Below, in pieces: positions 16,139 through 51,440 of a DNA stretch of 64,000 nucleotides. The notes beneath the pieces are model-generated. The model was not told the DNA's origin and searched no databases. It was given only the letters and a program-made list of their open reading frames with translations. The stretch is from Macrostomum hystrix (taxonomy: Eukaryota > Animalia > Platyhelminthes), in NCBI GenBank assembly GCA_950097015.1, contig CATNEN010000003.1, positions 11,966,001-12,030,000 on the forward strand, read 5' to 3'. Position 1 is the stretch's first letter, and every line of letters begins with the position of its first letter. The position numbers and the translations under genes are program-made.

Positions 16139-16280
16139 TAATAATAATACGAGTACTAATAATAGCTGTAGGGCTGCGGGCAATGGTACATCATTTGGTG
16201 ACATTAGACCCGCAGCCAGTGGCGAAGCAATTCTGCCCATTTCGCTGACTCCTGAGCACACGCGCACACAGGCACACACT
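16139..16280 (-). mobile_element. SINE family B, 5'-truncated
   Basis: Tail plus the 3' ~120 bp match the other family B copies. Confidence 0.85.
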
Positions 16281-16653
16281 CTGTGCAGCTCTTATGCTCT
16301 ACTTGGCTCTTCCAAAGTCTGCGTACAGCTGTTCAGGCAATACGAATAGAACAAGTTTAATCTTTAGTAGCATTTTCAGCCAGCGATTGTATACAAAACT
16401 ATATATATTTGTTATTTGCGTTGTGAAGCAAGAGTACAAAGTAAATATTAAAATACGTAATACACTTCCTTGTGTACTAATAGTAGTTAGAGATAAATAT
16501 TTCTGTTGTATAAAGATCGACAAAAGACAGCGAAAAATCCGCCAATTTTCATTCTAGCTAAAAAGTTAAAAAATAATTCCTGCAGAGAAAGTAAATGATT
16601 CGGAGCAAGAATTACATCTGAAAATATCAAAGTGAAAAATCTACATTAATCAA

Positions 16654-19600
16654 TCAATCAAAATCATCCCTGTCATCATATCCCCGCCTGCTGAGCTGTG
16701 AGCCTCTCTTCTGTCTGCGAACGCTGCCTGCAATTTTCGGGTTTACAAGATCCCCAAGCTTAGGAGTTTTGTTTTACAAGATCTCAGTTTTGGATTTTCG
16801 AATTTACAAGATCCCAACTTGGGATTTCCAAATGTACAAATCCCTTGTTAGTGTTTTCGAATCTACAAAACCCTACGTTAATAATAATAATAATTGCAGG
16901 AGGGCTGCGGGCAATGGCACATCATTTAGTGACGCTAGACCCGCAGCCAGCGAGGAGGCAGTTCTGCCCATTTCGCTGACTCCTGAGCACACACGCACAC
17001 ATTCACTCACACAGGTGTGTACATCTGCCCTGACTTTCTCATCGTCCGACAGTGTACACTTCACTGTGCCTTGGAGGTTGGCCCTCAAGGGCGTAAATTG
17101 CACAAGCCCCCAGGCCTTCTCTCCGCGGCTGCGCCCCAAATAAATGTGGAATCGAACTTAGGGACCTTGGTGCGAGAGGCAAACGCGTTAGCCGCTCTGC
17201 CATCGAACCCCAAACCCATGTTTGTGCTTTCAAATCTGCAAAATCCCATGTTTATGTTTTCGAATGTGCAAAATCCCATGTTTATGTTTTCGAATGTGCA
17301 AAATCCCATGTTGGGGTTTCTCTGTCTATAAAAATCTAAATTTGTTAAAAATTGCTCAGAAATCTCACCTCTGGACTCCTCGACCATGCTCACAAAGTCT
17401 ACAGTCATCTTTCGCGTGAGCTTCTTGTCCATGCCGGCGGATTTGCCGGCCTTGTCAACCATGTCTTTAATCTCCTCCTGGCTCAAGTCGGTTAGCGCCA
17501 CCAGCTTGCCAAACAGTTGCTTTCGCTGCTCCTATCAATCAAATGAATAATTTTGGTGAATGTCCAGCATTGTCGAGATATTCAGCGATCCTTGTCGAAG
17601 ACCTCAGTGACAAGAACAATATTTCGGGAGATACAGAAAAAAAGCGTAATGGGGGGTATCTCAGTACCCCGTTGTCTCTCTACTGATTATAGAAACGAAA
17701 CCAGACTCACCTCTAGATCGGCCTGCAGCTCATCTTCCATCTCTCTGTCTAGAACCTCCTGCTTTTTGCGCAGCTCCATTCGCATCTCCTCGTTAATGTC
17801 CATCATGGAGTTCCTATACTTGGTGTCTAGCACTGAGTCCATGACGAACTTAGCCATGCGGCTGTGTTTGAGAAAAAGTTACATGAGTGTTTTATGAGCA
17901 TGAGCAAGAATGCGTAACGGAATGCCTGCATGAAAGGCTCGGTGGAAATGCTTTGCAGGCTTGTCTCACCCGTGCCCGCTGGCCCGCAGCGCCCTGGCGG
18001 CCTTCTCCTCTTCCTCGTCCACCTCCTCCTGCACTCTGTCGCGTTTGTCCAGCTTCCTGCGCTGCAGCTCCTCTGTCAGCTGCCTCTCCTGGTGACGCCG
18101 TTCGTGATCCAACTGTCTAGACATGGCCGCCACCTGGTTGTCGTAGGCCTGAAGCACTTGGTCCAGACCCTGGGCATCGCCAGGTCGCACGCGACCCTCA
18201 GTGTGCTTCTGCAGCTGAGACTCCAGCTCTTTGAGCATTTTCTCCTGGGCTGTGAGCACTCCGCGACGTCTAGCCCGGCCAGTCTGCAGCCGGCCAATCA
18301 CGGCGCTCATTTGGGCCTCCTGGGCGAGCAGGGCCACCTCAGTCTCGCGTGCCATCTCGTCGCGCAGTCTAGCCAAACCTTCGCGTTGTTCAACTTCGGC
18401 TTGTTTTTCATTTTCGTCCAGTTTTCTGGCCAGCTCGCCGTCCAGTTTGTCGATGTCGGCGCGCTTGTCATCGTCTATGGCTAGTCTGGCATCGTGTGCC
18501 TCTTTTTTTAGACGGGCGGCGTTCGCACGACGCTCGGCTAGCTTGGCTTCAAAGGTGGCTTCCTGCCTTCGACGGGTCAACTGTTTCAGGAGGGTTCGGG
18601 TGTGATTGAACCTGTGTGCTTTTAGATTAATTGCTACCTATTTTAGACACCAAGCAGATTTGGTTATTAGTTAAAAGTTTCTTCTGCAACACCTTTTTAA
18701 AATACTTTACAATTATTTAGTCCTTCATTTCCGGAAACCGCTCCTCGTTTCCTGACACCGTTCCTCTCTTCCTGACACTGTTCCTCATTTTCTGACACAT
18801 TCCTTTCTTCCTGACACAGTTCTTCATTTTCTGACACATTCCTTTCTTCCTGACACAGTTCCTCATTTTCTGACACATTCCTTTCTTCCTGACACTGTTC
18901 CTCATTTCCTGACACTGTAACTCATTTTCTGACACCGTTCCTCATTTACTAACACGTTCCTCAGTTCCTGACACCTTTCCACACTTTCTGACTACGTTCT
19001 TCTACGTGACAACGTGACACCTTTCCTAATTATCTGGCACTTCCTGATTTTCTGACACCGTTCCGCATTTTCTGATACCTGTCTTCAGTAGTTTATTACT
19101 AAAAGCGAGTTTTCAAGCATTGTAACGTACCTGCAGATTGTTCGCCACAGCCAGCATGTTCCTTTCGTACTCTTCGATAATCTGTCGTTTAGTGTTCTCG
19201 TCCAAATCGACCTGAAATACTAGCGCCTTGCGCAGCACAACCTCTTGGCCTTTCTTCAAACTGGCCAGCTCGGCCTCTTGAGCTTCGAGTGACGCTTCTG
19301 CTCGAGCTTGCCTCTCGCGCAGTTTCTCCTCCAGCCGCATGGCCTGTTGCTTATGCTCATTGCGCTTCTGTCCTGCGGCAATGCAGGCGAGTTTTAGGAT
19401 CGATTATTGCAAAAAAAGCACTTAAAAATAAGAATCTATTGATCAAAAAATTATCTCACTTCTAAACCGATCTGTTTGGCTTCGATGATCGGACAAGAGC
19501 CTCCTTAGTTCATCCTCAGAGGCAGCGACGCCCAGCTGTTTCAGCGTCTCCTCGTCCAGTTTGGCCTCCGCGTCGTCTTTCTCGCGTGCCAGTTCCCGTC

Positions 19601-22600
19601 TCAACTGGTCCAACTGTCTGCACTCTCCCTCGTCCAGCTCGTTAGTTGCGTCGTTGTTAACTCGATCGGTTTCAGCCAGCGCTCGCTCAAATTCTTCTAG
19701 AAAGTTGTCCGGATCAGTGACGGTGCCGGCGTCGACTTTGGCGGCCAGTTGACGCTGCGGCTGAGCGGATTCGGCGTTCGTCTCCGCGAGTTTTTTGCGT
19801 CGCTCTTCGAGTAGACGCAATCGCAGAGCTTCTCGTTGAGCCAGGTAGCCTGGTTTGAAAATGTAGACGTTGATTGGTGATTATTTTTAGATTGATACTT
19901 CGGGTGTCCCGAGGGTGAATGGCAGAGCGGGGGGTCTATCGCGTTTCCCTTTCGCAGCAAAGTCCCTGAACTCGATTCCGCAGTGAGGGTACATTTATGC
20001 TCTTAAGTGCCAGCCTCCACGGCACAGTGTACACTGCCTGAGATGGGAAAGTCAACACTGATGTTGACGTCAGCGGAATGGGCAGAACTGCCTCCTCGCT
20101 GGGTGCGGTTCAGGTGTCACCAAATGAAGTGCCATTGCGCACAGCCTTACTGCTAGTATTTTAAGTTATTTTCATTTTAATAATAAATTAATGTAATAAC
20201 TGTTGTTTTCATTATTATTAGGGTGTCCCACAATTGACCCAAAACGACTCACCAAGAGCTGAGATCTTAAAAAAGATCGTACGCACATCAAAACTAAGTG
20301 AACTCACTCTTCTCAAACGCTTCCTTCTGTTTGAGCAGCTCTCGTCTGTAATTGGCCAACGCCTGTTGGGCCTGGGCCTCCCCAAGCCGTTTGTCCGCCA
20401 CCATCTCGGCCAACTGTTTTCGTCGAGCCTCCAGTCGGGGCTCAAGATCGTAGACAACGTCGTCGTCGGCGTTTTTCTGATCAGCCAATCGACGTCGACG
20501 AGTCGCCAGCTTGTCCTGCAGCTGCTGAGCGGCTCGCCGACGTTGGTCGGCCAGTTTAGCTTCCAGGCGTGCTTCACAGTCTCGCAGTTCGGCCAGCAAT
20601 CTAGCATTGTCAGGGTGTGATTTTTTTCGACTAATACACCGCTCACTACGAGGCGTAGCTAGCTCACCTACCAGTACCAGTGATAATAAGCTACAAAGAC
20701 CACAAATAGTTAGCAGTACGTAACAATCGGCTTTCGTGGAACTTTGTCAGCTGATTTTCGCAGAAAAGTACAGTAGCGAAGTTTAAATATTTCACGATAT
20801 TAATCTTACTCGTAACTATCTTGCTCAAACTTATTGCAGCCTTGGTGTAAGGAAAAAACAGCAGAAACTTATTAAAAAGACATAGTACATGTTCAAGTTC
20901 ATACCTGTCGACATCTTCAGGTGCGATGCCCTCCTGTTTTCTGATGTCCTTCTCGAAGGCCACAAGCTCCTCCTGCAGCTTCTCGCCTAGTCGGGGTCCG
21001 TACTCAGCGTCGATAGCGTCAGTGGCCGTCTGCTTCTGCTCGGTTGTCAGCGCGTTGTTCTCAGCTACGGCGTCTCGCCTAGTCTTGAACTCGGCGTCAA
21101 CCAACGCCTTGGCCTCCTTGAGTCGGTTGGTCTGGCGCTGGCGAAGCTCGTCCCGTTTTCGATCGTCGATCAGGCGTTGCGAGAGCAGCAGATTCAACAG
21201 ACTGCCGCAGAGACCGGCCAGGCCGATGAGCCGATTGCGCCACAATTGAAGCTGGTCCAGCTGGGCTGCGCGCATCTCTTGACGGGCCAGTTGGAGCTCA
21301 CCGTCGGCTCTGCGATAAAAAATGTGCCGGTTTTAATTTCGAGTCCTTGCGTTTTCGGTTTCAACACAAGCGCTCACAGACAGCCCAAACAAGATATGAT
21401 ATTAGGGCTTCATAGAGAGGGGCGCCTCCTTTGATTTCTCATTGCGGAAGCCAACTTAAATTGGGGAGAGGAAAATTGGATTTTAGGAGATGGGAAATTG
21501 GATTTCAGAGAAACTTGGATTTGGGGAAACTTAGATTTCAAGGTGAGGGGAAACTTGCATTTTAAGGAAACTTGGATTTTGGGGGAACTTGGATTTTGGG
21601 GGAAATTTGGATTTGGGTTGAGGGAAACTTGGATTTCGGGTGAAGGAAGCTCGGATTTGGGAAGAATGAAACTTGGATTTGGGGTGATGGAAACTTGGAT
21701 TTGGGGTGATGGAAACTTGGATTTGGGGTGATGGAAACTTGGATTTGGGGTGATGGAAACTTGGATTTGGGGGGATGGAAACTTGGATTTGGGGTGATGG
21801 AAACTTGGATTTGGGGTGATGGAAACTTGGATTTGGGGTGATGGAAACTTGGATTTGGGGGGATGGAAACTTGGATTTGGGGTGATGGAAACTTGGATTT
21901 GGGGTGATGGAAACTTGGATTTGGGGTGAGGGAAACTTGGATTTGGGGTGATGGAAACTTGGATTTGGGGGGATGGAAACTTGGATTTGGGGGGATGGAA
22001 ACTTGGATTTGGGGTGATGGAAACTTGGATTTGGGGTGAGGGAAACTTGGATTTCGGGTGAGGGAAACTTGGATTTGGGGTGAGGGAAACTTGGATTTCG
22101 GGTGGGGGAAGCTCGGATTTGGGAAGAATGAAACTTGGATTTGGGGTGAGGGAAACTTGGATTTGGGGTGAGGGAAACTAATTGGATTTGGGGAGAAGGA
22201 AACTTGGATTTGGGGAGAAGGAAACTTGGATTTGGGGAGAATGAAACTTGGACTTCGGGTAAATTTGGATGACGGCGAAACTTGGATTTTGGGGCTTAAT
22301 TTTTTGGGATTTTTGATTTGTGGAGGCCTTAGATTTGGGAGGGGCAAACTCTTTATTTGTGTACAGCAGAAACTTAGATTCCCTCGCCCCTAGAAATAAA
22401 CTTGGAAACATGGATGTATTGAGGAGGACTTGGGTTTGGGGGAAGCTAACTCGGACTTGGCGGGATTGCACCTTGGCCACATGACTAAGCCTGTGCTACC
22501 CTAATACACATTTAAATGCAACTACTAAGGTAGTTTATCCTTACTCTGTTGTCTGCGTTATGGCGTCAATTAAAGCTAGTTCATCTCTGCCAACAGTGAA

Positions 22601-23552
22601 ATTGGCACCAGCCTCCAATAATTTGAGCTCAACCAGGATGTTGGCGGGATCGAGGAAGCCGATGCGCCTGCCGCCGCGCTGGCGGGACGAGTTCAAACGA
22701 GCGGAGCCGCGTCGGCGACCGCCGCCTCCTTCGACTTCATCGTCCGATTGCGGTGGTATCGCGCCCGTCTCCGGGTTTGTCTGCAGACAGTTGGTTATCG
22801 TGTCTAATCGTGTCTATCGTGTTTTTTATCGCTATGTACAATCAGTTAATGAATGGACCTACCTCCTTTTTTGCTTTTTCCAGTGGTCCTTTAGGATCTT
22901 CTAGACAGTTTAATCTATGAAATTGCTGCAAGGAATAAATAGAACCCAAATTGAATCCAGTGAACTCAAAATAATACTTCTGTTTGTTTATTGAAGCCAC
23001 GCTGACCTACCTCGAAGCAGCTTATTTCAGCTTGTTCGGAGTGCAATTTTTCCAGGCACATCATGTTGAACGATCTGTTTTTGAACTGTGGGAAGATGAT
23101 AGAGAAACATGTGCTAATTGACACCTGCACTTGCAGGTGTAATGTCATAAAGTCAACGTACCTTCATTTGGTAGTTTTTTTACTGATCATTAATTTAATT
23201 TTCAAGAAATGATTCAAATTAAAGAAGCAGAATTCTGCCATTTTAACATAGAATTATCTTTTTTTAAATGAGCTCAACAAATACAAAATACATATAGATA
23301 TGAAGTTTATCAAACAAAGAAAATCGAAGAAATTGTTGGCTTTATGCTAAGCATTTAGAGCGCTTAATAAAACAAATGCAATATCTTATTTAATATATAA
23401 CTTACACGTCGATAACAGAAGAAGATCCAGAAGCAAATAAAGCATGGTATAAGTGCCACAATAAAGCCAATGAAAAATCCTAGTGCCCCAAGGCCGCCAT
23501 CGACACTTCCAGCCGCGAGAGTCACTGTGTAGAATTCTGTACAGCTAGACAT
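16654..23552 (-). CDS. EVC: EVC-like (Ellis-van Creveld) protein, ~924 aa, N-terminal TM plus coiled coil. Exons 23552-23406, 22925-22863, 22780-22545, 21309-20905, 20600-20308, 19849-19460, 19372-19131, 18580-17970, 17861-17711, 17531-17369, 16727-16654
   Basis: 11 exons splice in frame at canonical sites; signal-anchor LGALGFFIGFIVALIPCFICFWIFFC; E/R/Q/L-rich helical tail visibly paralogous to the neighbour; size, topology and head-to-head position fit EVC. Confidence 0.78.
16880..17210 (-). mobile_element. tRNA-derived SINE family B, inserted in a degenerate 30-bp minisatellite
   Basis: Minus strand: tggcagagcgg (A-box), gttcgattcc (B-box), (ATT)n tail. Confidence 0.9.
18735..19080. repeat. 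19/20-bp (39-bp dimer) minisatellite (tttctgacac..ttcctcat)n
   Basis: Visible tandem array in an EVC intron. Confidence 0.9.
19910..20165 (+). mobile_element. SINE family B, diverged and internally deleted
   Basis: tggcagagcgg...ctcgattccgcagtgagg...aatgggcagaactgcctcctcgctgg. Confidence 0.8.
21465..22295. repeat. 22-bp G-rich minisatellite (ggaaacttggatttggggtgat)n
   Basis: Visible tandem array. Confidence 0.95.
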
Positions 23553-24664
23553 CTCCTATGCCTGCTTTTAAGCCGATTCGGTTTAATTAGTCGTTTTGCA
23601 GCGATAAATAAGTGGCGTGATTAGCGATGTTATTTATTGTCTGCAGCGGACTTAACTCTTCTGCGAACTTTTTTCAACGTAAATCTGCTCAATGGGCACA
23701 AAACCTGAGGAAAGAAAAAAGACAAATTGTTGAACGAGTAACTAGAAACAAAAAAGATTGCACATAACATTTGTCATAACAATAACTATCTGTAATATTT
23801 TAAATAACAAAACTCTGCTTTTAAGTTATTTTAATATAGTTTTTTAATAATCGGCAGGCAATCTTTTTAATGTTTGTTTTAATGGTTGCTATGCTAAAAT
23901 TCATGTAAACATAAAGTCATGAAATTCAAAGCGCATGCGTCATTTCATTTTTTCTAGAAGCTAACCTTGAGCGCTGCTGACAAGTTGCTTATAATACGTA
24001 AAGTGTATCAGTAGCATTTTATATTTGAATTTGGTGTACTTTAATGCGATAAACATAATACTTTCTTGATTAGCAATGTCTTCATCAGCATGATTTATTT
24101 TCGTTTCAATCAGGCTTAGCATCGCAACGTTTTATTGTTCTAATTGAACGAAAGACAGTATGAAACAGAGGCTTTTCAATAACTCAGTTTCCTAGTTTTT
24201 CTGAAAATTGCACAGCTTATCTTTTTATCACAATTATAACAGTTTTATGTTTAACACACTTTATCTCAGCTTATATTGCTTATATTATCAATGCAGTTGA
24301 CCGCAAATTAATTAAGCATAGATAATTATGCGAAACGTAAAGTTGAATTTGTATTTATATGCATGCAAAATAATTTTTTAACTTATCATTACTGATGTTA
24401 CTAGACTAAAATTAAGGCTTTTAACTTTAACTCATAAAAACTATAAAACAAAACTATAAACTATAAAAAGTTTATAATACAAAATTCAAGAAACTAAGTC
24501 CTATGTAACATAAATATTTTAGATTCATAGATTCTAGGTATCGCATAGGCAACTTAAACTATTTTTATTAGTAAACTTCCATATCTTTAAATCCTGATAT
24601 TTCATTTCAGCAATCTTAGTTGTCCATGAGTAAAGATCAATTTCAGCATCCTTGGCAGCTAGCA
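23553..24664. promoter_or_regulatory. Putative bidirectional promoter between EVC-like and EVC2-like genes
   Basis: Divergent start codons ~1.1 kb apart; AT-rich and repeat-free; RFX half-site gttgctatg at 23885. Confidence 0.6.
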
Positions 24665-27600
24665 ATGCCACTAATCCTACCCAGTCTTCTGCTTTTAATA
24701 ATATGTTATCCTGCTAGTAGTCAAGCTCAGACACTTTCAATCAGTCCTTCAACGGTCGACTGGTCCACTAGATTCGCCGCGACCTATTGCTTAGATGGCA
24801 GCTCAGCACAAGTCGGAGGCAGTGTGCAATTAAATCTGGTTGTTGCTAACGAGTTTGTCAGCAATCGAGTGTGCTATCGATGGCTCAATGGCTCTTTGAG
24901 CGGCGTTTGTAGCCAGAGCTACTCAGCATTCTTTGAGTACGCGTTCGGAGCACACAGGGATGGCTATTATACACTGCAGGCTAACGGTGTCACTCTAACA
25001 GCCAGCAGCTACACAATACAGCAGGTGAGTTTGATAGCTTAAAAACATTTCTTCCTATCTTGGGACATGTGCATAATGGATAGGTTTAGCCAAAACTAGT
25101 AATAATTTAAGCATCCTAGACTGGATTCTAAAAACTTTCCTCATAATGAAACCTGTTGTATAGAATCAGTTAGATACAGAATCGAACCTGTTAGATACAG
25201 AATTGAACCTGATAGATACAGAATCGAACCTGTTAGATACAGAATCGAACCTGTTAGATACAGAATCGAACCTGTTAGATACAGAATTGAACCTGATAGA
25301 TACAGAATCCAACCTGTTAGATACAGAATTGAACCTGTAAGATACAGAATCCAACCTGTTAGATACAGAATCCAACCTGTTAGATACTGAATCGAGCCTG
25401 TTAGATACAGAATCCAACCTGTTAGATACAGAATTGAACCTGATAGATACAGAATCGAGCCTGTTAGATACAGAATTGAACCTGTTAGATACAGAATCCA
25501 ACCTGTTAGATACAGAATCCAACCTGTTAGATACTGAATCGAGCCTGTTAGATACAGAATCCAACCTGTTAGATACAGAATTGAACCTGATAGATACAGA
25601 ATCGAGCCTGTTAGATACAGAATCCAACCTGTTAGATACAGAATCCAACCTGTAAGATACAGAATCCAACCTGTTAGATACAGAATTGAACCTGATAGAT
25701 ACAGAATCGAGCCTGTTAGATACAGAATTGAACCTGTTAGATACAGAATCCAACCTGTTAGATACAGAATCCAACCTGTTAGATACTGAATCGAGCCTGT
25801 TAGATGCAGAATCGAGCCTGTAAGATACAGAATCCAACCTGTAAGATACAGAATCCAACCTGTTAGATACAGAATTGAACCTGTTAGATGCAGAATCGAG
25901 CCTGTCAGATACAGAATTGAACCTGTTAGATGCAGAATCGAGCCTGTTAGATACAGAATCGAACCTGATAGATACAGAATCGAGCCTGTTAGATACAAAA
26001 TTGAACCTGATGGATACAGAATCCAACCTGTTAGATACAGAATCCAACCTGTTAGATACAGAATTGAACCTGTAAGATACAGAATCGAGCCTGTTAGATA
26101 CAGAATTGAACCTGTAAGATACAGAATCCAACCTGTTAGATACAGAATCGAGCCTGTTAGATACAGAATTGAACCTGTTAGATACAGAATCCAACCTGTT
26201 AGATACAGAATCGAGCCTGTTAGATACAGAATCCAACCTGTTAGATACAGAATTGAACCTGTAAGATACAGAATCCAACCTGTAAGATACAGAATCCAAC
26301 CTGTTAGATACAGAATTGAACCTGTTAGATACAGAATCGAACCTGTTAGATACAGAATCGAGCCTGTTAGATACAGAATCCAACCTGTTAGATACAGAAT
26401 TGAACCTGATAGATACAGAATCGAGCCTGTTAGATACAGAATTGAACCTGTAAGATACAGAATCCAACCTGTAAGATACAGAATCCAACCTGTTAGATAC
26501 AGAATTGAACCTGTTAGATACAGAATCGAGCCTGTTAGATGCAGAATCGAGCCTGTTAGATACAGAATCGAGCCTGTTAGATACAGAATCCAACCTGTTA
26601 GATGCAGAATCGAACCTGTTAGATACAGAATCCAAACTGTTAGATACAGAATCCAACCTGTTAGATGCAGAATCCAACCTGTTAGATACAGAATCGAGCC
26701 TGTTAGATACAGAATCCAACCTGTTAGATACAGAATTGAACCTGATAGATACAGAATCCAACCTGTTAGATACAGAATCCAACCTGTTAGATGCAGAATC
26801 CAACCTGTTAGATACAGAATTGAACCTGTAAGATACAGAATCCAACCTGTTAGATACAGAATCCAACCTGTTAGATACAGAATCCAACCTGTTAGATACA
26901 GAATCCAACCTGTTAGATACAGAATTGAACCTGTAAGATACAGAATCCAACCTGTTAGATACAGAATCCAACCTGTTAGATACAGAATCCAACCTGTTAG
27001 ATACAGAATTGAACCTGTAAGATACAGAATCCAACCTGTAAGATACAGAATCCAACCTGTAAGATACAGAATCCAACCTGTTAGATACAGAATTGAACCT
27101 GTTAGATGCAGAATCGAGCCTGTTAGATACAGAATTGAACCTGATAGATACAGAATCGAACCTGTTAGATACAGAATCCAACCTGTTAGATACAGAATCC
27201 AACCTGTTAGATACAGAATCCAACCTGTTAGATTCAGAATCGAGCCTGTTAGATACAGAATCGAACCTGTTAGATACAGAATCCAACCTGTTAGATGAAG
27301 AATCAAACCTGTTAGATACAGAATCCAACCTGTTAGATACAGAATCGAACCTGTTAGATACAGAATCCAACCTGTTAGATACAGAATCGAGCCTGTTAGA
27401 TACAGAATCCAACCTGTTAGATACAGAATCGAACCTGTTAGATACAGAATCCAACCTGTTAGATACAGAATCGAACCTGTTAGATACAGAATCCAACCTG
27501 TTAGATACAGAATCGAACCTGTTAGATACAGAATCCAACCTGTTAGATACAGAATCGAGCCTGTTAGATACAGAATCCAACCTGTTAGATACAGAATCCA

Positions 27601-39600: not shown

Positions 39601-42600
39601 GTCAACGCTTTGAAGAGGCTCGCGATCAGGTTGAGCGTCAGGCCACGGCGGCACAGACAGACGCTGCGGCTGATGCCGTGTCGTGCATCGAACAGCTGAC
39701 CGATCTCAGAGCACGCCAGCGCGACAAACGTGACGAATTGGAAGGCCAAATCGACGAGGACGACATGCACGCTCTGGATGAGAAAATTGAGGAGGTTACG
39801 AGCAAGGCCAAGGCCGGAGTTGCAGAGGCCAAAGAGGCTCTAGTTAAGGATCTACTTAGCGCCGGTGAGTTGCTGCTTGCTCTTGAAGTAAATCGTAGCC
39901 TTGTGGAGGGGGTTGTAGCCTTGTGGAGCAGGTTGTAGCCGTGTGGAGCAGGTTGTAGCCTTGTGGAGGAGGTTGTAGCCTTGTGGAGGAAGTTGTAGCC
40001 TTCTGGTTAGAGCGTCGGACTTACGACTTGAAGGTCGGGGTTCGATTCCCGACTCTAGTGGAACAATTTTTGTCCTTCAGCAAGACACTTAACTCTGCAT
40101 TGCTTCAGTTCACCCAGCTGTTAAATGGGTACCAGCATTGGCGGGGTAATTGAGGGTGGGTGTAGCGTCCCCCCAGTCCATGGACTGAATAGCTAGCTGT
40201 ACACGCGCTACATATACGTTGAAATAGTTGCATAATCTAGAAAAAGCAAGAGCTAGTCTAGCCAAAAGAAGTGAAAATATTGCTCTTTTTCATCAATTTC
40301 TCCCTTATAGCTGCAGTATGCACTGCATGCTCATTGTTTCCATTGCGGCACTCCCTCAAAAAAGACAATGGCAGTCTCTCTTACCCTTCTACTCTGTTTC
40401 CCAGATTTTCAACAAAAAAGCTGCACTCACTCATTGAGCCTCATCAATTATTTCCTAGGCAACCAAACTAGATGAGGGTGGATGGGAAGGCACAGCAGGC
40501 ATCGGCCCAAATCAATACGAGTAAATTACACTTCACTTCATGCAGCTCAGTGAAGCTGGAGCGGGAAAGCTTAGACAGGCATAGGTAAATTCAGTTGGCG
40601 TTAGATGGACAATGATAGTGCATTAAGAGAAATCCAGGTTTCCCTCTAGCGCACGAATTAACCTATCATTTTGACTGCAGCTACAATTTTAATAGTACAA
40701 AAGTATTTTTACTTACCTATACAATTTTTACCTATACCTTACTTACCTATACTATACAGTCTTTACAATTTTATTTTTCTACTCCTGAATTTAGCTTCAA
40801 AGACTTCAATAATGCATAATACATTTTTTAGATTTTTTGCTTCTACTTTAGCTTTTTAAAGTATTATCTTAGGTTTAGGAACCAGTAAGATTAGCCTAGC
40901 AACTTATGAATCTATCATACCAACCATTCAAATTAGCATAGCAACCAGAAAGATTATCATAGCAACCAGTTAAAAAAGCAAAGCATAGCAACAAATTAAA
41001 GAAGCATAGCAACCAGAGGGATTAGCATGGAAACCAGAAAGATTACCATAGCAACCATTTAAATAGCATAGCTACCATAAAGATGTGCGAGCTACAAAAT
41101 TGTAACCATTCTCTCGAACCATTTCAAAATGTTTCAGAAGCCGACAAGCGTGAGATCGATAAGCTCCTGCGCCTCCACGACAAAGAGTTGGCCAAGCTGC
41201 AAGCTGAGCAGGAGCAGCAGAGGCATCAACAGCGGGAGAGCTTCAATGAGGCCCTGCGAAAGAGACGCGAGGCCCTGGAAAAGCGCCTGGCCGAAGATAA
41301 ACGCGAGAAGGAAGAGCAGCGCGAACAGGAGAAGACTGTTGTGCGCGAAATACTCAACCAGCAGTTGGCGATGTCCGAAGAGGAGCGCGAAAGAATCCTC
41401 AGGGAGCACGAGAGAAACATGTCCATGATGGACCAGAACCTCACCTCTAACCGGATTCGGCAGCAAAGACTGCTTGAGGAGGCCTACGCCAGAAGGAAGG
41501 CGGCCAGTTTGAAGTCGCTGGAAGTCAGGCAGGCAGCCGAGACCGCCAGCAAGGCTAGGAGGCTGCAGGGTGAGGATTTGGGAATTGTGGTATCTGGGAA
41601 GTATGGGATGTGGGAAGTGTGGGATGTGGGAAGAGTGGGATCTGGGAAGTATGGGATGTGAGATGTGTGGGATGTGGGAAGAGTGGGATCTGGGAAGTAT
41701 GGGATATGGGAAGTGTAAGATGTGGGAAGTATGGGATATGGGAAGTGTAAGATGTGGGAAGTATGGGATCTGGGAAGTATGGGATGTGGGAAGTATGGGA
41801 TCTGGGAAGTATGGGATGTGGGAAGTGTGGGATGTGGGAAGAGTGGTATCTGGGAAGTATGGGATATGGGAAGTGTAAGATGTGGGAAGCATGGGATATG
41901 GGAAGTGTAAGATGTGGGAAGTATGGGATCTGGGAAGTATGGGATGTGGGAAGTGTGGTATCTGGGAAGTATGGGATGTGGGAAGTGTGGGATGTGGGAA
42001 GAGTGCGATCTGGGAAGTATGGGATCTCGGAAGTATGGGATTGGGAAGTATGGGATCTGGGAAGTATGGGATCTGGGAAGTATGGGATCTGGGAAGTGTG
42101 GTATGTGGGAAATATTGGATCTGGGAAGTGTGGGATATAGGAAGTGTGGTATGTGGGAATGTGGGATGTGGGAAGTGTGGGAAGTGCGAATGTGGGAAGT
42201 GTGGGATGTGGGAAGTGTGGGATCTGGGAAGTGTGGGATTTGGGAAGTGTGGGATGTGGAAAGTATGGGATATGGGAAGTGTGGGATCTGGGAAGTGTGG
42301 GATTTGGGAAGTTTGGGATGAAGGAAGTGGGATTTGGGAAGTGTGGGATGAAGGAAGTGGGATTTGGGAAGTGTAGGGTTTGGGAAGTGTGGGATTTGGG
42401 AAGTGTGGGATGGGGAAAATGGTGGATATGGGAAGCATGGAGTGTAGGAAGTTTGAAATCTAAGAAATGTGGAATGTGGCAAGTGTTGAATCTGGGATTT
42501 GGAAATTATGGTAAACGTGAAGACCTGAATATGGGAAGTGTGAGATAGGGCATTTGAGGGTTATGCTACGTTTAGCCTGGAAATTGTGTGATATGGGATA

Positions 42601-45600
42601 AAGGGGCTTTAAGCCCGGTGATTTGACCGTCGGACTTCTGACTAAAAGGTCAGGAGTTCGAATGTCAGCCCACGAAGTGTGACAAAAACATTGGATTGAA
42701 CAAAACGCAGAATTCCCGCAAGTGTTCCAGCTCACCCAGCTGAAAGATGACTCCATTTATAATAAAAGCTGCTAACATCCTAACTTGTTGCTTCAGGCTC
42801 GCGCTACAGCGAAGACGAAGACGGTGACGGATCTGGCGACGGTGGCAAAGAGGCTGCTGAAGCACTGCACAAGCAGGCGCTCGCCCGTCTAGACGTGATG
42901 CGTGGCGAGGAGGTTTCACTTGAGGACGAGATGAAGGAGGTTCAGGCGCAGATGCTGGAGGAGAGAGCCCAGCAGCTCAAGGAGCAGGAGGAGCGTCTGG
43001 CTGCCATCATCGCTCAACTGCAGCTGGACAAGGCCAAGGAGGTTGGTGCCTGCTTGTCAAAATGCTGTTGAGTATTTATTAACAGTAGAAAGACCACATA
43101 TTTAAAAGTAATAGTTTAAGAGATACAGGAAAAATAAAAAACTGTTTTTAATCTTTATGAATAAATAAAAATTATTTTATCTTTGAAATGCGCACGCCAG
43201 AGAATGCACGCCACAAGCACAAGCCACAACCAACCCCAAATATGTGGGTATTTGAAACCCTCGTAGATTTTCTACTGTTAACCTGTAATAACTAAGGCCG
43301 AGGCTATTTTTAGTGAGCAGACAAAACTCTCAATCTTTACTGCCACGCTGAGCGCGCGTCCATATATTATTTGCTAGAACTGGGGTGGCGACACCCACCC
43401 CGCTCCGCAACCAATCAAACGACCCAGGTGTACACCTGGGCCTGGCTCACGTGCGTACGCACACTACATCTCTCCCCCTTCGAACAGAAACTGTGGGGAG
43501 ACAAAAAAAGAACGAATTCGAGAAGCAAGATGTCGAAAAGAACGAAAAAGAACTCGACCGAAAAAAAATATGCAGCTATTGGAGGAAATAAAACACTCGA
43601 ATTGATAGTCGCATCGGACTTGCAAAGAAAAGCGTGCATGTGATTGTTAATGTCAGTGGAAAAGTCAGTTCGTTTTCAGTCCTTGGTTTAGTCCTTGTAG
43701 ATCTTCACGCCACCCCGTGCAGCGCGGGGGTGCGGGCGCAGCGCCACCGGGGATTCGGCCGGGTTCCGCGCCGCCTCGCCTGGAGTTTCTGGCGCGGCAG
43801 CCTGCGGCCTGGCACCAGCGTCGTCTGATTCTGGGGTGACGACCTTGACCGCCGTGCAATGCCGCCAGCAGGCCGCGCCGTCACGACGCAGCATCAGCGA
43901 GTTGCCGGCCACCCGCTGGACTGTCCAGGCGCCGCTCTCGAATGGCGTTTGCGTCTTGCTGGCACCGACTCGCCGTCGCAGCACCGAATCGCCGACCTGG
44001 ATTTCGTGCCGCCGTGGCCGCCTCCTGGCGTCCGCTCGCTGCTTCATCGCGGCCTTGGCGCTCGCATCCATCTCTCGCAGCCGCTGCTCGTTGATGCGGA
44101 CGCGCTGGGATGGCCGGGCGGCGGGGATGACATCATTTGGTCGCCGGCCCATCAGCAGCTCGGCTGGCGCGCGGCCCGTGGCTGTGTGCGGCGTGTTCCT
44201 GTAGGCCAGCAGCCACTCGTCCAGAGCAGCCCTCCAGTCGCGCCGCTCCTCGATTGCCGCCCGCACGACCTTGTTGATTGAGCGGTTCAGCCGCTCTGTC
44301 ATGCCGTTGGCGGCTGGGTAGTAAGGCGTGATGAGGCGGTGCTTGATGCCGTAGCTTTCTAGGAAACGGCCAAACTCCTTGGATGAAAATGGCGGCCCGT
44401 TGTCAGTTACGAGCTCCTGCGGGATGCCAAATCGCGCGAACATTTCTCGCAGGCGCGGGACCAGTGCCTCGGCCGTCGTTGTCTGCATGAGCTGCACCTC
44501 TGGGAATCTCGAGTATCTGTCCACGCACACCAGCAGCATGTTGTTGTTGATCGGGCCCACAAAGTCAGCCCCAATCGACAACCAGGCGCCCTTAGGGATA
44601 GGCGTCGGCTGTAGAGGCGTAGCCCGGACGGCTGGCGTGTGAGACGTGATGGCACAGCTGCGGCACCGACTGACGAACTCCTCCGCTTGTGTTGCCATTC
44701 TCGGCCACCAGACCTTGCTGCTGAGCCTTGCGGTCGTCTTCTGCGAGCACTGGTGTCCTTGGTGCGCCAGCTCGAGCATCTGCTGCCGTAGAGCTGCTGG
44801 CACGACAATCCGCTGATGCCGAAGAAGAACTCCGTCTACCGCCGACAGCTCCTCTCGCAGCGCGTGGAGTGACCGCATCTCAGCGCTAGAGCGGTCCCAT
44901 TGGCCGCCTTGCATCGCTGCTATCGCTGCCCGGATAACTGGGTCGCTGGCTGAGCTCTTGCGGATGTCTTCGAGCGTGAGCGCCTTCGGGACAGCCGCCT
45001 GCGCTACCTCGTTTATGTAGGCCTCTCTCAGCTGCTCGCTGGTCCTACTTCCTTCAGCGTTTAGAGGCTGCCTGCTGAGTATGTCTGCAGCATTGGACGC
45101 TCCTGGCTGGTATTCGACCTTGAATACCAGGTGCTGGATACGCAGCGCCATACGCTCGACTCGTGGAGGCGGCCGTGACCCTGGCGCATACATGGCTGTC
45201 AGCGGCTTGTGGTCGGAGATCACCGTGAATTCGGGCGATCCATACAAGTAGTACTCAAACTTCAGGCAGCCGAACTTCACGGCGAGCGCCTCTTTTTCGG
45301 TCTGCGAATATCGCCGCTCTACGTCGGAGAGGGTCCGGCTCGCGTATGCGACTGGCCGCGAACTGCCGTCGTGCTGTACTTGCGCCAGGATTGCGCCGAG
45401 TCCGGTTGGTCCCGCGTCCACAATCAGCTGTGTCCGTAGCCGCTTGTCGTAGAATGCCAGCGTTGTCGGCTCCGCAATGCTGCGCTTTAGCTGCGCAAAG
45501 GCGCTGGCCTGGTCGGCGCCCCACTGCCAGTCGGTGCTCTTCCGGGTCAGGCGTCGCAGCGGCTCCGCCACCTTGGCCAGCTGTGGCGTGAATACTGCGA

Positions 45601-48600
45601 GATAATTCACGAGGCCCAAGAACGATCGAAGTTGGCTTATCGTCTCTGGCTCCTTGAATTCTTGAACGGCGGCGACCTTGCTTTCTGTGGCTTGGACTCC
45701 TTCGGCCGTCAGTCGCATTCCCATAAACTCAATGCTGCTGCGTGCCAACCTGCATTTAGCGTGATGCCGTGTTGCGCCAGGCGGGCCAGGCAGGCCTCGA
45801 GGCTGCTGTTGTGCTCCGCCATCGTGCGGCCGAACACGACCACGTCGTCGTGGATCCATTTTACGTTGGGCAGGCCTGCCAGCACTCTGCACATCACGCT
45901 CTGTAGGATCTCCTGTGAGGTGGACAGGCCCATGCACAGCCGAGTGAGACGACGAAGTCCTCGGGGTGTCGAGAATGTCAGCAGATTGCGGCATTCTTCT
46001 GCTACAGGCACCTGGTAGAACGCCTTCGCGATGTCCAGTTCCGAGAAGACGGTGCTGCCGGCCATGTCTCCCGTCACCTCTTCAAAAGTCGGAATCTGGT
46101 GACGCTCGCGGATGACATAGCGATTGACATCGCGGAGGTCCTGTGTGATCCGCACTTCGCCTGGCTCCTTCTTGGGCACAACGACCATCCGCGCGACCCA
46201 CGGAACTGGTCCGTCGACGGGCTCGATGATTCCGAGCTGCTCCAGTAGCTGCAGCTCCTTGTCCACTGCCTCGGCCAGGTGAATCGGTACCTTAGACGGT
46301 GCGTGACAAACCGGTCGGGCGTTGTCGGTCAGGTGGATGCTGACTGGCGGCCCGGTGAAGCAGCCGATGCCGCTGAGCACGCTGGAGTACTTGCGCAGTA
46401 TCCTGCCAAGGGCATCTTGGGGCATTCCACTGGATCTCGTGTTGCCGAGGAGGCTGTCGACAGCCGCCTCCGCTTCCGCGACCTGCAGCACCTGATGATC
46501 GACCGTCGGTGGTGGTCCGATCCGCAGGATTTCCATTTGAGTGGCCGTCTGCCTGCCGATGATGGTGATGCCTCTGCCTTCGACAACGTGAAATGTGGCG
46601 ACCGCCCGTCGGCCGAATAAGCGGATGGACATCGCCGCCTTGCCGATGAGTTGCATCGGCCGGTCCGAGCCGTACGCGAACAACCTGTCAGAGGCTGCTT
46701 GCAGACGCGGCCGCTGTTTAAGGCTCTCAAACGTTGCGCGGTTGATCACATTGCGAGCCGCCCCGCTGTCGATCAGCACTGACAGTCTGGTGCCGTTGAT
46801 CTCAGCTACTGTGTGGGCGGATTGCTCCTCCTGGTCGACCTTGAATATGCCGGTGTCCGGGTCGTCCACCCTCTCGTAGCTGGTCTCACCTTGCAGCATC
46901 GCGACAGCATTCGAATTGCTTTGGGGCGCCTCCTGCCTGGACCTGCAAGCTCGGGCGAAGTGGCCTGGCTTTCCGCACTTTCTGCAGCTCTTGCCTTGCG
47001 CCGCGGCGCACGTGGAGTGCCCTGGCCTGCCGCACCGATTGCAGCGCACCTGCGGCCCTGGTGGCTGCTCGGCTCTCCGGATGGCTGCGAGTTGCTGCTG
47101 CGGCTCACCTGGCCTGCCGTTCTCCATCGCGCTGGCCTGCTGCTCCGCCGCTTCTTTGGCTCTCGCCTTCCTCAGCACATCTGTCAGGGTGATATCTTTG
47201 CTCTGTAGGAAGTCTCTCCTCAGCCTCTCGGAGTCACAGTAGGCGACGATTTTGTCTCGGATCAGCGAGTCCTTGATCGCTCCAAACTCGCACGGCTCCG
47301 CCGCCTTGCGCAGGCGCTGGTACCACTGGTCGATTGTCTCGCCTTGCTGTTGTCTGCAGGTCTCGAACTTGAAGCGGAGGAACACGATGCTGTTCTTGCC
47401 GTCCCAGAATTCCTGGATATTCTTTGCGAGGCTGCTGTAGTCTTCCCCAGCGTCAATTTCATTCTCTTCGACGATGGTCTGCAGCTCCTCTCCCGCGGCG
47501 TACAACAGCAGGTGCTGCCCTCGCTTTGCGTCATGGATCCCAGCTGCGTTAATGTATGTGGCGAACCGGCGAGCCCATGCAGTCCAGCGCTGTGCAGTTG
47601 AGTGGCAATCGCTATCGATAACAAACTGGCCGGGAGGCGCGAGAGAAATTTGCTCAGTCATGGTGCACTAGGGGTTCGGTGCTTGCGATGCCATTGTAAT
47701 AACTAAGGCCGAGGCTATTTTTAGTGAGCAGACAAAACTCTCAATCTTTACTGCCACGCTGAGCGCGCGTCCATATATTATTTGCTAGAACTGGGGTGGC
47801 GACACCCACCCCGCTCCGCAACCAATCAAACGACCCAGGTGTACACCTGGGCCTGGCTCACGTGCGTACGCACACTACATAACCGATATCTAATTTTCCA
47901 ATTTACCCCCTTGCAGATGGCTAAAATTGAAGAGCAACAACAGGCGATTGCACAGCTGAAGCTCAGCCTGCTGGACGATCTCACTGATCGGCACATTCTT
48001 AGCGATGACCGGTGCAAACAGATTCTGCAGGATCACGAGGAACAGTTGGAAGTGCTGCTAACTAAAAAGGAGAAGGAGAGGGAGCGCCAGCAAAGGGTTA
48101 GCTGACTTTATATGCACATGATATTATCTTTCGGGGGTTTATTGAAAATGTACATTTCACTAGCCGCAACCAACCCCAAATATAATATCTTTAGAATGCG
48201 CACGCAAGAGAATGTACATTCCTCGAGCCGCAACCAACCCCAAATATAATATCTTTAGAATGCGCACGCAAGAGAATGTACATTCCTCGAGCCACAACCA
48301 ACCCCAAATATCTTATCTTTAAAATCTCGCAGTATGCTGTTTTTAGAATCAAAGTTGAATGAACGAAGGGGTGAGAAAGTATTGCTTAAGGAGCCTTAAG
48401 GGTCCTTCCAGCTCCAACCCCTCAGTAGGCTATTTTTAGAATAAAGCTAGGACGAGTGGGAAAGAAAAGATGTACATTTAACCTTTTAAAGAGGTTCACA
48501 AGTACTTTCATAAAGTTTGGTTCAGTGTGTTGTATGAATGGCGACACAATCATAAACAAAAAATATATTGAAAAAACTTTAGAAAATGCAAGAAGCAATG

Positions 48601-51440
48601 GAGCGCCGAATTACAAAGAAGCAGGACCAGTTGATGCGTGAGCAACGGGCTGTCTTGGAGGAATCTATAGCCGGCCTTAGTCGTCACGATCGGGTTGCTG
48701 CTCAACTAAGGCGCGCCATGATTGAGACGCGACAGGCAGCCGAGGCTGAGAAGTTTCGCAAACAATTGGAATGGGAGATGGATCAGAATCTGCAGGAGAG
48801 TCGGCGAAAGTACAAGCAGAGGATACAGGAGATACTGCAGGAGCAGGAGTTTAAGTGAGTCATTTTGGACTCATTGCGGGAGAAAAGGATTGAAATCGAG
48901 ACAAAATATAAGAATGCCTAGGGCAAAATACATTTTAGGTAGAAAGTCAGCTAATTAGGGTAGAAAGATTGACAGTGGGGTAGAAAGACTGACTGTTGGG
49001 GATAGAAAGACAGACAGTGGGGATAGAAAGTCAGCCAATTTGTAGAAAGACAGACGGTGGGGGTAGAAAGACGGACAGTAGGGGTAGAAAGACGGACAGT
49101 AGGGATAGAAAGACGGACGGTGGGGGTAGAAAGACGGACGGTGGGGGTAGAAAGACGGACGGTGGGGGTAGAAAGACGGACGGTGGGGGTAGAAAGACGG
49201 ACGGTGGGGGTAGAAAGACGGACGGTGGGGGTAGAAAGACGGACGGTGGGGGTAGAAAGACCAGAAAGCGTCAGCCTCAGGCACCCGCCCCACTCCGCTC
49301 AGGTTTATCGGCATGCTGGCAGAGCTGGGTCGGTTCTCGCACAAGCAGCTGCTGGATCTGGTGTGCGCTCTGTTCCCTAGCCGAAGCCGCGATGATCTTG
49401 AACAGATAGTCAGCAAGATGCTTCCCAAGGAGGCTGCGGGCACCGCGCCAGGCAAGCGGCCGGCACGCGCAGGAGAAGAAGCTTCAGCTCAGGAGTCAGA
49501 GGAGCGCGCCCAGCTCATGCTGGAGAAGAGTTTGAAATTCCGCAGCGCAATGATGGGCGGCGCCGCCGACGCGCTGTTGGCCATCCAAAAGTTCAAGTTG
49601 TCACCGAAGAGGTAAAACAAAGCATCAGCTGACGTATTTTCTGTATTTTTTGTAAATAATAATAATAATAATAATAATATTAATAATAATAATAGTAATT
49701 GCAGGAGGGCTGCGGGCAATGGCACATCATTTAGTGACACTAGACCCGCAGCCAGCGATGAGGCAATTCCGCCCATTTCGCTGACTCCTGAGCACACACG
49801 CACACAGATACTGTACGCATGCATACGCTCACACAGGTGTGTACATCTGCCCTGTCTTTCTTATCGTCAGGCAGTGTACATTTGACTGTGCCTTGGAGGT
49901 TGGCCCTCAAGGGCGCGAATTGCACGACAAGCCCCCATGCCTTTTCTCCGCGGCTGCGCCCCAAATAAATGTGGCCTCGCCGTGGAATCGAACTTAGGGA
50001 CCTTGGTGCGAGAGGCAAACGCGATAACCGCTCTGCCACCGACCCCCTACGTTATGCGAGTATGTTAGGATTCACCTTATTTTTAAAGTTAATCGCTTAC
50101 GAATTTCCCTGATTGACGTGGGGATAGTCCACTGGGATATTTCAATACCCACTGCCTACTTCACCATAGCTCCCAAGCTGAGTGACCGATTTTCGTGAAC
50201 AGTAATTTGGGTACTTTACGAAAAACTAACTTTCTAAGACGTCCGGTGTCAGCATCGTGTTATATGATAAAACTTGACAATATAATTAATAAAATGTAAT
50301 TAATTACATTAACTTTTAAAGATTGTTGGCGAGAATTGTTGAATATCTCGACGATGCCGATGTCCTGTGATTCTAGAAGTTGTTTGATCAGACAGAGTGA
50401 AAAGTTTTCGTCCGTGTTCTAGATTTTCTTGGGGACGGTTTGAATATTTTAGGAGATCTAGAAAATGATAAAATGTGGTTATTTGAAATATAACCCTCAG
50501 TCTTTCTACCGTTAAGAAATCTTTGCGATTTTTTATAAACTTAAAATTTCAATCAATAGCAAAAAAGATTCAATTCAGCTCGCATATAATTGTTTTATTG
50601 CTTAAATTGTTTCCACTCTAGAATTTCCCTGTAAATTGATTTCCTATCAAGGGCCTTCCCGGATTTATGATTTCCCCAGTAGATCCAAGATCCAAAAGTA
50701 GAGGATTTCCCTGACGAGATTTACCTTCTTGGATTTCCCTGACCTTGGATTTCCCTGACCTTGGATTTCCCTGGCCTTGGATTTCCCTGGCCTTGGATTT
50801 CCGTAACCGTGGATTTCCCTGACCTTGGATTTCACTGGCCTTGCTTTTCCCTGACCAAAGATTTCCTTAGCCATGGATTCCCTTGGCCTTTAATTTTCCC
50901 TGACCTTGGATTTCCCGACCTTGGATTTCCTTGACCTTGGATTTCCATGACCTTGGATTTCCCTGTCCTTAGATTTTCATGTCCTTAGATTTCCCTTAGA
51001 TTTTCCTAGACAGAAATTTCCGATCTAGTGAGTTTTTAAGATCAAGAACTTTCATTTATCGAAAGCAATAAGTCCTCAGCATCTCTGAGCTCTTAGTTGT
51101 TGATCGCATTTCCAGGAAAGCCGCTCGAAATGAGGCTGGCGAGCTGAAGTCGATTCCGGCCAGCTACAACTCGGAGTCGCTGACGCCAATCGATGGCTCC
51201 TACGATAGGAGCGCCAACGGTAAACAGCGAGCCGCTTCCAACTCGCTGGACTATCCGCCCTCGAGTCGGCAGCCGCATCCGCCGCCAGTCGGTCGCGGCG
51301 GGGATCTTCCTCCTCTGGATGCCGACTTTGGCACCGGCTCAAAGAAGTCCGGCAGCAAAAAGAAGAACCACATGCCGCCGCCCTTGAAGCCGGCTGTGCG
51401 TCGCGTCGACGAGACCTTGTCCGAGGAAGAGTCCGTCTGA
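24665..51440 (+). CDS. EVC2: EVC2/limbin-like type I membrane protein, ~1900 aa. Exons 24665-25024, 29862-30221, 31188-31401, 32176-32235, 32363-32431, 34123-34557, 34912-35085, 35864-36093, 36195-36350, 36973-37213, 37300-37412, 37494-37724, 38436-38518, 38600-39864, 41138-41569, 42797-43041, 47917-48096, 48583-48854, 49303-49611, 51116-51440 (alternative in-frame ATG at 24626)
   Basis: Signal peptide [21 protein letters not shown]; beta-rich ectodomain; [29 protein letters not shown]; juxtamembrane [22 protein letters not shown]...[12 protein letters not shown] resembles (from memory) the EVC2_like domain; long coiled coil; junction phases are compatible. Confidence 0.82.
25150..29810. repeat. 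~4.6-kb 21-bp satellite (tagatacagaatcsaacctgt)n, ~220 units, EVC2 intron 1
   Basis: Visible tandem array with variant units. Confidence 0.98.
30300..30815. repeat. Degenerate 19/20-bp minisatellite (attttggggaatccctgacc)n
   Basis: Visible tandem array. Confidence 0.9.
31455..31994. repeat. (GGAA)n purine microsatellite
   Basis: Direct. Confidence 0.98.
32590..33166. repeat. (TAC)n/(TACTA)n compound microsatellite
   Basis: Direct. Confidence 0.97.
33485..34020. repeat. 13-bp-based minisatellite (ccatccctgtgtta-like)
   Basis: Direct. Confidence 0.95.
35215..35581. repeat. Minisatellite (22- and 35-bp units) containing aTGACGTCAt
   Basis: About 12 copies of atgacgtcatcatcctgtatca. Confidence 0.95.
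36525..36848 (+). mobile_element. SINE family B
   Basis: tRNA-like head and body match the other copies. Confidence 0.88.
37745..38062 (-). mobile_element. SINE family B, B-box region deleted
   Basis: Matches family B; lacks the ggaatcgaac segment. Confidence 0.88.
38125..38280. repeat. 16-bp minisatellite (aaaagttcactttcct)n
   Basis: Direct. Confidence 0.93.
39895..40192 (+). mobile_element. SINE family A (CORE-like) with tandemly amplified 5' end, 3'-truncated
   Basis: Several ~20-bp units ggaggaggttgtagccttgt, then tRNA head, then ccttcagcaagacacttaactctgcattgcttcagttcacccagctgttaaatggg. Confidence 0.88.
40890..41080. repeat. Degenerate ~20-bp array of (tagcatagcaacca)-like units
   Basis: About 7-9 units containing tagcaac or a close variant. 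Confidence 0.75.
41575..42545. repeat. 8/16-bp G-rich minisatellite (tgggaagtatgggatc)n
   Basis: Direct. Confidence 0.95.
43284..43468 (-). repeat. 3' LTR (185 bp)
   Basis: Identical by eye to 47695-47879. Confidence 0.96.
43688..47661 (-). pseudogene. gag-pol polyprotein broken by one frameshift at ~45755 inside RT
   Basis: Zn knuckles CNRCGRPGH and [14 protein letters not shown], protease LIDSGA, RT WIHDDVV, RNase H VDAG...[10 protein letters not shown], integrase HQGH...CRSC and ADF/TDNG/TER; frame switches at HGITL / [13 protein letters not shown]. Confidence 0.92.
47695..47879 (-). repeat. 5' LTR (185 bp)
   Basis: Identical by eye to 43284-43468. Confidence 0.96.
48145..48322. repeat. 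63-bp tandem units related to 43178-43243
   Basis: atcttt.gaatgcgcacgc.agagaatg...agccacaaccaaccccaaatat occurs in both introns. Confidence 0.85.
48957..49262. repeat. 21-bp G-rich minisatellite (gggggtagaaagacggacggt)n
   Basis: Direct. Confidence 0.94.
49655..50046 (-). mobile_element. SINE family B, full length
   Basis: Minus: ggggtcggtggcagagcgg...gttcgattccacggcgaggcc...tgcaatt plus (ATT)n tail. Confidence 0.92.
50700..51010. repeat. 16-bp minisatellite (ccttggatttccctga)n
   Basis: Direct. Confidence 0.92.

Follow-up and report, generated by a model that had tools for sequence, protein, structure and literature searches.

We studied two neighbouring genes of the flatworm Macrostomum hystrix that lie in a stretch of 64,000 nucleotides (assembly GCA_950097015.1, contig CATNEN010000003.1, positions 11,966,001 to 12,030,000 of the forward strand). 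This whole stretch is called the window below, and positions are counted from its first letter. Gene A is on the minus strand and runs from an ATG at 23552 to a stop codon at 16654-16656; gene B is on the plus strand and runs from an ATG at 24626 to a stop codon at 51438-51440. The genes are divergent, 5'-to-5', and their start codons are separated by 1,073 bp. An earlier note on this DNA, made from the sequence alone, had described a head-to-head pair of paralogues resembling EVC and EVC2, with starts about 1.1 kb apart and outer limits at 16654 and 51440. The spacing agrees, and the limits are exactly the two stop codons. All six peptides that it quoted are encoded at the implied places, three of them contiguously and three across exon junctions, and in both genes a single transmembrane (TM) segment is followed by a long, charged helical tail, as it had stated.

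EVC and EVC2, known in humans as the genes of Ellis-van Creveld and Weyers disease, act in a cilium-specific step of vertebrate Hedgehog signalling. All searches described here were run exon by exon, and protein lengths are sums of exon parts.

Gene B is colinear with a protein of 1,716 amino acids (aa) from the sister species M. lignano (A0A1I8ID62 / PAA82292.1), in 15 tblastn blocks that reach to the stop codon. Its product of about 1,700 aa is, as read from the sequence, a type I membrane protein with the architecture of EVC2: a signal peptide and an ectodomain of about 660 aa, followed by a single TM segment and a long coiled-coil tail. The large cytoplasmic exon, which is single copy in the genome, is the counterpart of the Pfam EVC2_like region in its orthologues. 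An exhaustive phmmer search with the 471-aa open frame of this exon against 1.84 billion representative proteins gave 35 matches in total. Among these are 17 long matches: the M. lignano protein (74% identity) and 16 proteins from outside the flatworms (724-1,686 aa, E 6e-37 to 1e-7), which come from molluscs, a brachiopod, a hemichordate, echinoderms and amphioxus. The Pfam model EVC2_like (PF12297) is passed by all 15 of the non-flatworm long matches that were scanned, the Strongylocentrotus protein being the one unscanned, and the proteins of Haliotis, Saccoglossus, Mizuhopecten, Strongylocentrotus and Branchiostoma are named limbin, limbin-like or EVC2 in their sources. In the same phmmer search EVC2 was undetectable among planarian or parasitic flatworm proteins.

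Further, six cytoplasmic exons of gene B are colinear with non-flatworm EVC2s in tblastn. We also used a custom profile of 17 non-flatworm EVC2 proteins, searched against all 1,925 open frames that are 30 aa or longer; these frames are from the window and from 50 kb of another contig, C38, where a second EVC-like gene, here called A', is located. The gene B exons score 207, 116, 69, 56, 35 and 28 bits. Bona fide EVC2s are thus its best matches outside the flatworms, with significant and colinear similarity. Given the limbin/EVC2 matches, their EVC2_like domains and the colinear exons, gene B is by its sequence clearly an EVC2/limbin orthologue.

Gene A is transcribed and spliced. Each of four public RNA-type runs (one study) contains one transcript contig of 3.1-3.4 kb that agrees with the gene with 0 mismatches and skips seven intervals, all of them GT..AG on the minus strand. 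The exons have AG/GT flanks throughout and continuous phases, and the frame is open to the stop codon. The junction joining AVANNLQ to LTRRRQ, which the earlier note had used, is found in the spliced contigs of the four runs. The transcript comparison reached to 21400, and about 660 nt of each contig lie further upstream. Two further 5' exons (22545-22780 and 23406-23552), with canonical signals and correct phases, fit these 660 nt and leave about 280 nt as 5' untranslated region (UTR), so that about 280 bp of the intergenic region is probably taken up by the gene A 5'UTR. At the other end one contig extends about 158 nt past 16400.

The product of gene A is about 903 aa long. A 19-residue N-terminus precedes the TM segment (residues 20-47, encoded at about 23412-23495), which is followed by YRR. 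As read from the sequence, this is an N-terminal signal anchor with a charged helical or coiled-coil tail. Like EVC, the protein thus has a signal anchor, no ectodomain and a coiled-coil tail, its length is within the range of about 900-1,000 aa of EVC, and like EVC it is encoded head to head beside EVC2.

Among the 1,925 frames, matches to the EVC2 profile are confined to gene B, gene A and gene A'. The exons of gene A are colinear on the profile, at positions 249-284 (the TM exon, E 7e-4), 527-626, 630-760, 758-839 and 844-1041. Exon e6 is the most conserved block in common with EVC2. In hhalign, exon e5 has a probability of 96.5% (E 7e-10) and exon e6 of 95.1% (E 3e-8). The span shared by gene A and EVC2 covers about 515 profile positions (527-1041), in line with the published homologous span of about 550 aa between EVC (339-889) and EVC2 (469-1018). 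Of the three pairs of peptides that the earlier note had aligned between the genes, the first two share profile columns; the third is at a colinear place, but its score is below zero. In the post-membrane exon e2, similarity to the EVC2 family is undetectable with the profile. Other searches gave less: a word-indexed search with a 223-aa frame of gene A, swamped by low-complexity words, found no homologue among proteins of 123-390 aa, a PDB sequence search with two queries returned no EVC or EVC2 chain, and exon e6 had no useful cluster in the ESM Atlas (best score 0.75). The paralogy of genes A and B is significant only via the profile of outside EVC2 orthologues. Through that profile, gene A is an EVC/EVC2-family paralogue of EVC-type architecture in the position of EVC.

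EVC and EVC2 derive from a duplication in early metazoans (Blair et al. 2011, PMC3052239). Within the conserved block, other EVC2s have 32-43% identity with the flatworm EVC2; for gene A and A' the figure is 18-32% against any EVC2 and just 22% against the flatworm EVC2. That gene A is no closer to the flatworm EVC2 than to other EVC2s fits an ancient EVC/EVC2 split. In maximum likelihood (ML) trees A and A' form a group (support 100/100) outside all EVC2s, and the flatworm EVC2 is placed among the protostome sequences. Intron positions are common to A and A' but not to A and B. Both the identities and the ML trees speak for the ancient split, and gene A is very probably the orthologue of EVC. 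As a whole, the pair is best explained as the M. hystrix EVC2 (limbin) and a head-to-head EVC-type paralogue, which we regard as likely. At its core the reading of the earlier note stands, with gene B an EVC2/limbin orthologue and gene A a member of the family in the position of EVC; taken as a whole, it is supported in part.

The second EVC-like gene, A', is an unlinked full paralogue of gene A on the minus strand of contig C38 (about 3,790,450-3,800,097). Its TM exon and tail exons are 45-55% identical to those of gene A. There is no EVC2-like exon near it in 50 kb of the contig (3,776,001-3,826,000), i.e. to about 14 kb and 26 kb past its ends. The features of the linked pair are collected in Table 1.

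Table 1. Exons of genes A and B, the region between them and a dispersed repeat, in window positions.
Feature	Position	Strand	Evidence
Gene A last exon, 23 codons + stop 16654-16656 + 3'UTR	16400-16727	-	spliced contigs in 4 runs; frame
Gene A exon e8, EQRKQLFGKLVALTDLSQEEIKDMV...	17369-17531	-	spliced contigs; colinear profile place, not significant
Gene A exon e7	17711-17861	-	spliced contigs, frame
Gene A exon e6, 203 aa, LRDEMARETEVALLAQEAQMSAVIGRLQ...	17970-18580	-	contigs; EVC2 profile 844-1041, E 1e-5
Gene A exon e5, ...QIIEEYERNMLAVANNLQ	19131-19372	-	contigs; EVC2 profile 758-839, E 5e-5
Gene A exon e4	19460-19849	-	contigs; EVC2 profile 630-760, E 3e-7
Gene A exon e3, start of EVC2-shared region	20308-20600	-	contigs; EVC2 profile 527-626, E 2e-3
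Gene A exon e2, post-membrane region	20905-21309	-	spliced contigs, frame
Gene A exon e1b, inferred	22545-22780	-	AG acceptor, GTAAGG donor, correct phases, length fits contigs
Gene A first coding exon, ATG 23552, GTAAGT donor	23406-23552	-	signals, phase; EVC2 profile TM 249-284
Divergent intergenic region, 1,073 bp between ATGs	23553-24625	.	positions of both start codons
Gene B exon 1, ATG + signal peptide (MSKDQF...), 3' end approximate	24626-25027	+	tblastn block, 72% identity to M. lignano
Gene B ectodomain exons, approximate tblastn blocks	29835-30230, 31188-31403, 34896-35084	+	M. lignano protein
Gene B ectodomain exons, approximate tblastn blocks (continued)	35854-36096, 36195-36350, 36958-37212	+	M. 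lignano protein
Gene B TM exon block	37302-37724	+	TM ~37581-37676; EVC2 profile 227-291, E 2e-7
Gene B large cytoplasmic exon, 471-aa open frame 38523-39935	38436-39863	+	phmmer; EVC2 profile 207 bits
Gene B exons 41134-41562 (ILREHERNM motif) and 42847-43044	41134-43044	+	tblastn; EVC2 profile E 2e-34, 2e-20
Gene B cytoplasmic exons	47914-48096, 48583-48855, 49301-49612	+	tblastn; EVC2 profile E 1e-16, 3e-10, 4e-8
Gene B last exon, tail DLPPL..., stop 51438-51440 (open reading frame 51072-51437)	51078-51440	+	open reading frame; tblastn
~340-bp repeat copies	16154-16279, 16860-17220, 20069-20170, 36521-36846, 37744-38062, 49684-50047, 58132-58489		

By homology with the vertebrate proteins we infer a complex of the two products, their co-regulation, a ciliary location and a link to Hedgehog. 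The tails of the gene A and gene B products would pair as a heterodimer, which would be membrane-bound at the cilium base and, in Hedgehog signalling, would carry the signal of activated Smoothened on to the SUFU/GLI step. The short common upstream region would keep both subunits co-expressed.

A number of results weigh against reading the pair as EVC and EVC2 with their vertebrate function. The Pfam model EVC2_like, which the earlier note had put forward as a check, matches neither the exons in the window nor the M. lignano orthologue: there is no match to the gene B exons searched singly at E <=1, none to the full-length M. lignano protein at E <=0.01, and for the gene A exons only a weak TM match in exon 1 (E 0.19). 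For gene B we read this as a limit of the sensitivity of the model on divergent flatworm sequence, and recognition by PF12297 is an operational rather than a biological mark of EVC2. The model is blind to both genes, and it took a direct search together with a custom profile to place them in the family. A six-frame PF12297 search of the whole genome also found nothing, but the controls were equally silent, so it is uninformative. When the exons of gene A are compared with those of gene B directly by BLASTP, there are only non-colinear matches of 13-22 bits, equalled by shuffled exons; the claim of the earlier note that the genes are paralogues on the window sequence alone is therefore not borne out, as the window by itself does not suffice to show paralogy. 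The sequences to which gene A was compared are EVC2s and A', with no EVC among them. In the intergenic region (23553-24625) no X-box (RFX) motif is present at <=1 mismatch, where 0.6 would be expected by chance. The unlinked A', instead of gene A, could be the working partner of gene B. As to novelty, the ancient linkage that the earlier note proposed is already in print (Blair et al. 2011, PMC3052239).

Parts of the Hedgehog context also weigh against this function. The genome has a Hedgehog signalling-domain locus (C1:1308700-1309011) and, in a six-frame Pfam search, at least 11 Frizzled-family loci. Seven of these 11 were compared with PDB and are all Frizzled-like, and another two share 74-79% identity with a Frizzled-4-like locus; a twelfth, weak match of this search turned out to be a class B/adhesion G-protein-coupled receptor. 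None of the 11 is Smoothened-like, which is not proof of absence. Rink's work of 2009 is reported to have found cilia dispensable for planarian Hedgehog signalling. PMC9695228, which cites Rink 2009, describes planarian Hedgehog signalling as having been studied there in relation to cilia. According to a 2026 preprint, most flatworms have a single Smoothened, with none in M. cliftonense and Stenostomum, which implies that M. hystrix has one.

The direct A-to-B comparison is what one would expect if the genes were two unrelated, generic coiled-coil membrane proteins, neighbours by chance, with peptides that are alike in composition only. This is hardly credible. Among the 1,925 frames the EVC2 profile matches only these genes, in a colinear way and with the TM exon included, hhalign gives gene A a probability of 95-96%, and gene B matches limbin proteins at E 6e-37; the idea is refuted by phmmer for gene B, by the EVC2 profile and by hhalign. 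A different origin within the family deserves more attention, although we consider it quite unlikely: gene A, together with A', could be an EVC2 duplicate that was inverted in the flatworm lineage, lost its ectodomain and then evolved fast, the true EVC having been lost. Approximately unbiased (AU) tests leave this standing, as a clade of A, A' and the flatworm EVC2 is not rejected (p 0.17 and 0.39), and all three sequences are long branches. In addition, EVC2, IQCE and EFCAB7 turned up in a survey of annelids, but EVC did not (PMC9695228); two annelid transcriptomes with EVC2 gave no EVC, so EVC can be lost or is hard to find. However, A and A' are no nearer to the flatworm EVC2 than to mollusc or deuterostome EVC2s, the ML trees set them outside all EVC2s, and A and B lack common intron positions. 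The signal anchor, the size and the head-to-head position of gene A are also exactly as for EVC elsewhere.

It should also be considered which of the two EVC-like genes provides the main subunit. A' has the shorter branch (0.5 against 1.56 for gene A), its exon e5 matches the EVC2 profile better (E 6e-10 against 5e-5), and it retains NSLQLSRLR. The unlinked A' could then be the main EVC subunit, while the linked gene A would be diverging, its role altered or diminished. We think this unlikely, since gene A is intact, with spliced, full-length transcripts in four runs, and it is the copy that has kept the ancestral linkage. Equally improbable, in our view, is that the EVC-EVC2 module of Macrostomum is independent of Smoothened and Hedgehog. 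It would then be a receptor at the cilium base whose large, lineage-diverged ectodomain senses an extracellular cue, with linked A and unlinked A' giving two complexes. If this were true, its retention in an early-branching flatworm, when EVC2 is undetectable among planarian or parasitic flatworm proteins, would mark the timing of the uncoupling of cilia and Hedgehog in flatworms. The preferred reading is still that of an EVC2 with a linked EVC-type partner.

The position of the TM segment varies between EVC2 proteins: molluscs have it at about 170-280 and echinoderms at about 505-540, and in amphioxus, Lingula and Macrostomum it is found at about 660-710 (residues 661-695 in M. lignano). The large ectodomain is thus not peculiar to the flatworm, and large EVC2 ectodomains are widespread in invertebrates. 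Over most of its length the Macrostomum ectodomain has no detectable similarity to other EVC2 ectodomains; the one exception is the block at 36940-37245, which matches them at E 2.7e-5. Near the C-terminus, an LPPL motif beside a lysine run is common to the EVC2s of gene B, M. lignano, six molluscs and amphioxus. This LPPL/poly-K tail may be what corresponds in invertebrates to the vertebrate tethering peptide ('W'), which binds EFCAB7-IQCE. A dibasic RARR site is present in the ectodomain exon 35854-36096 and is identical in the M. lignano orthologue.

The introns of gene B are packed with satellite arrays, at 25169-29815, 31455-31994, 32590-33168, 33486-34025 and 41574-42497. The largest, in intron 1, consists of 221 copies of a 21-bp unit over 4.6 kb. 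Gene A contains a 22/44-bp array (21465-22260). Another intron of gene B holds a Ty3/Gypsy-type long terminal repeat (LTR) retrotransposon on the minus strand (43317-48102), with two overlapping frames: 45712-47667 with a zinc knuckle, an aspartyl protease and a reverse transcriptase, and 43691-46081 with RNase H and an integrase. The segments 43317-43640 and 47728-48102 open with the same short frame, identical over its first 51 residues, and look like the two LTRs. There is also a dispersed repeat of about 340 bp, with several copies in the introns of both genes. Over the copy at 16901-17234 the contig depth is 50-200 times that of the gene A exons, and ARAGORN did not find a tRNA-like part in the repeat. 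A tRNA-Arg (anticodon TCG) is located on the plus strand at 61113-61187.

In flatworms, doubts have been raised about the link of Hedgehog to cilia. If confirmed and expressed, the Macrostomum EVC/EVC2 pair would be a handle on whether the Hedgehog step at the cilium base is ancestral in Spiralia, and M. lignano is open to RNA interference and transgenesis. In the literature we found no report on EVC2 together with flatworms. The M. lignano orthologue of gene B (74% identity over the large exon, 15 colinear blocks) is labelled 'REJ domain-containing protein' or 'hypothetical protein' and not EVC2 or limbin, and, as seen above, Pfam EVC2_like overlooks divergent members of the family.

When compared with the vertebrate pair, the M. 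hystrix genes are alike in several respects. They are divergent and head to head; gene B resembles EVC2 in its signal peptide, ectodomain, one TM segment and coiled-coil tail, and gene A resembles EVC in its N-terminal signal anchor and coiled-coil tail. In both pairs the tails are homologous over about 500-550 residues. There are also differences: the flatworm EVC2 has an ectodomain of about 660 aa, compared with about 200 aa in mouse, the flatworm protein is missed by Pfam EVC2_like, and the flatworm has an extra, unlinked EVC-like gene.

EVC and EVC2 are head to head in vertebrates, amphioxus, sea urchin and the snail Lottia, and flies and nematodes have lost the two genes (Blair et al. 2011, PMC3052239). 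The pair described here shares with those of amphioxus, sea urchin and Lottia the two-gene, 5'-to-5' layout, with about 1.07 kb between the ATGs in M. hystrix, and the nearest relatives of gene B outside the flatworms are the limbin/EVC2 proteins of lineages with these published invertebrate pairs. It differs from them in its phylum (Platyhelminthes, Macrostomorpha) and in the gene B introns, which are swollen by satellites and an LTR element. As the head-to-head layout has been published for snail, sea urchin and amphioxus, M. hystrix extends a known pattern by one phylum. What is new is the flatworm case itself, together with the second, unlinked EVC-like gene and the conserved LPPL/poly-K tail.

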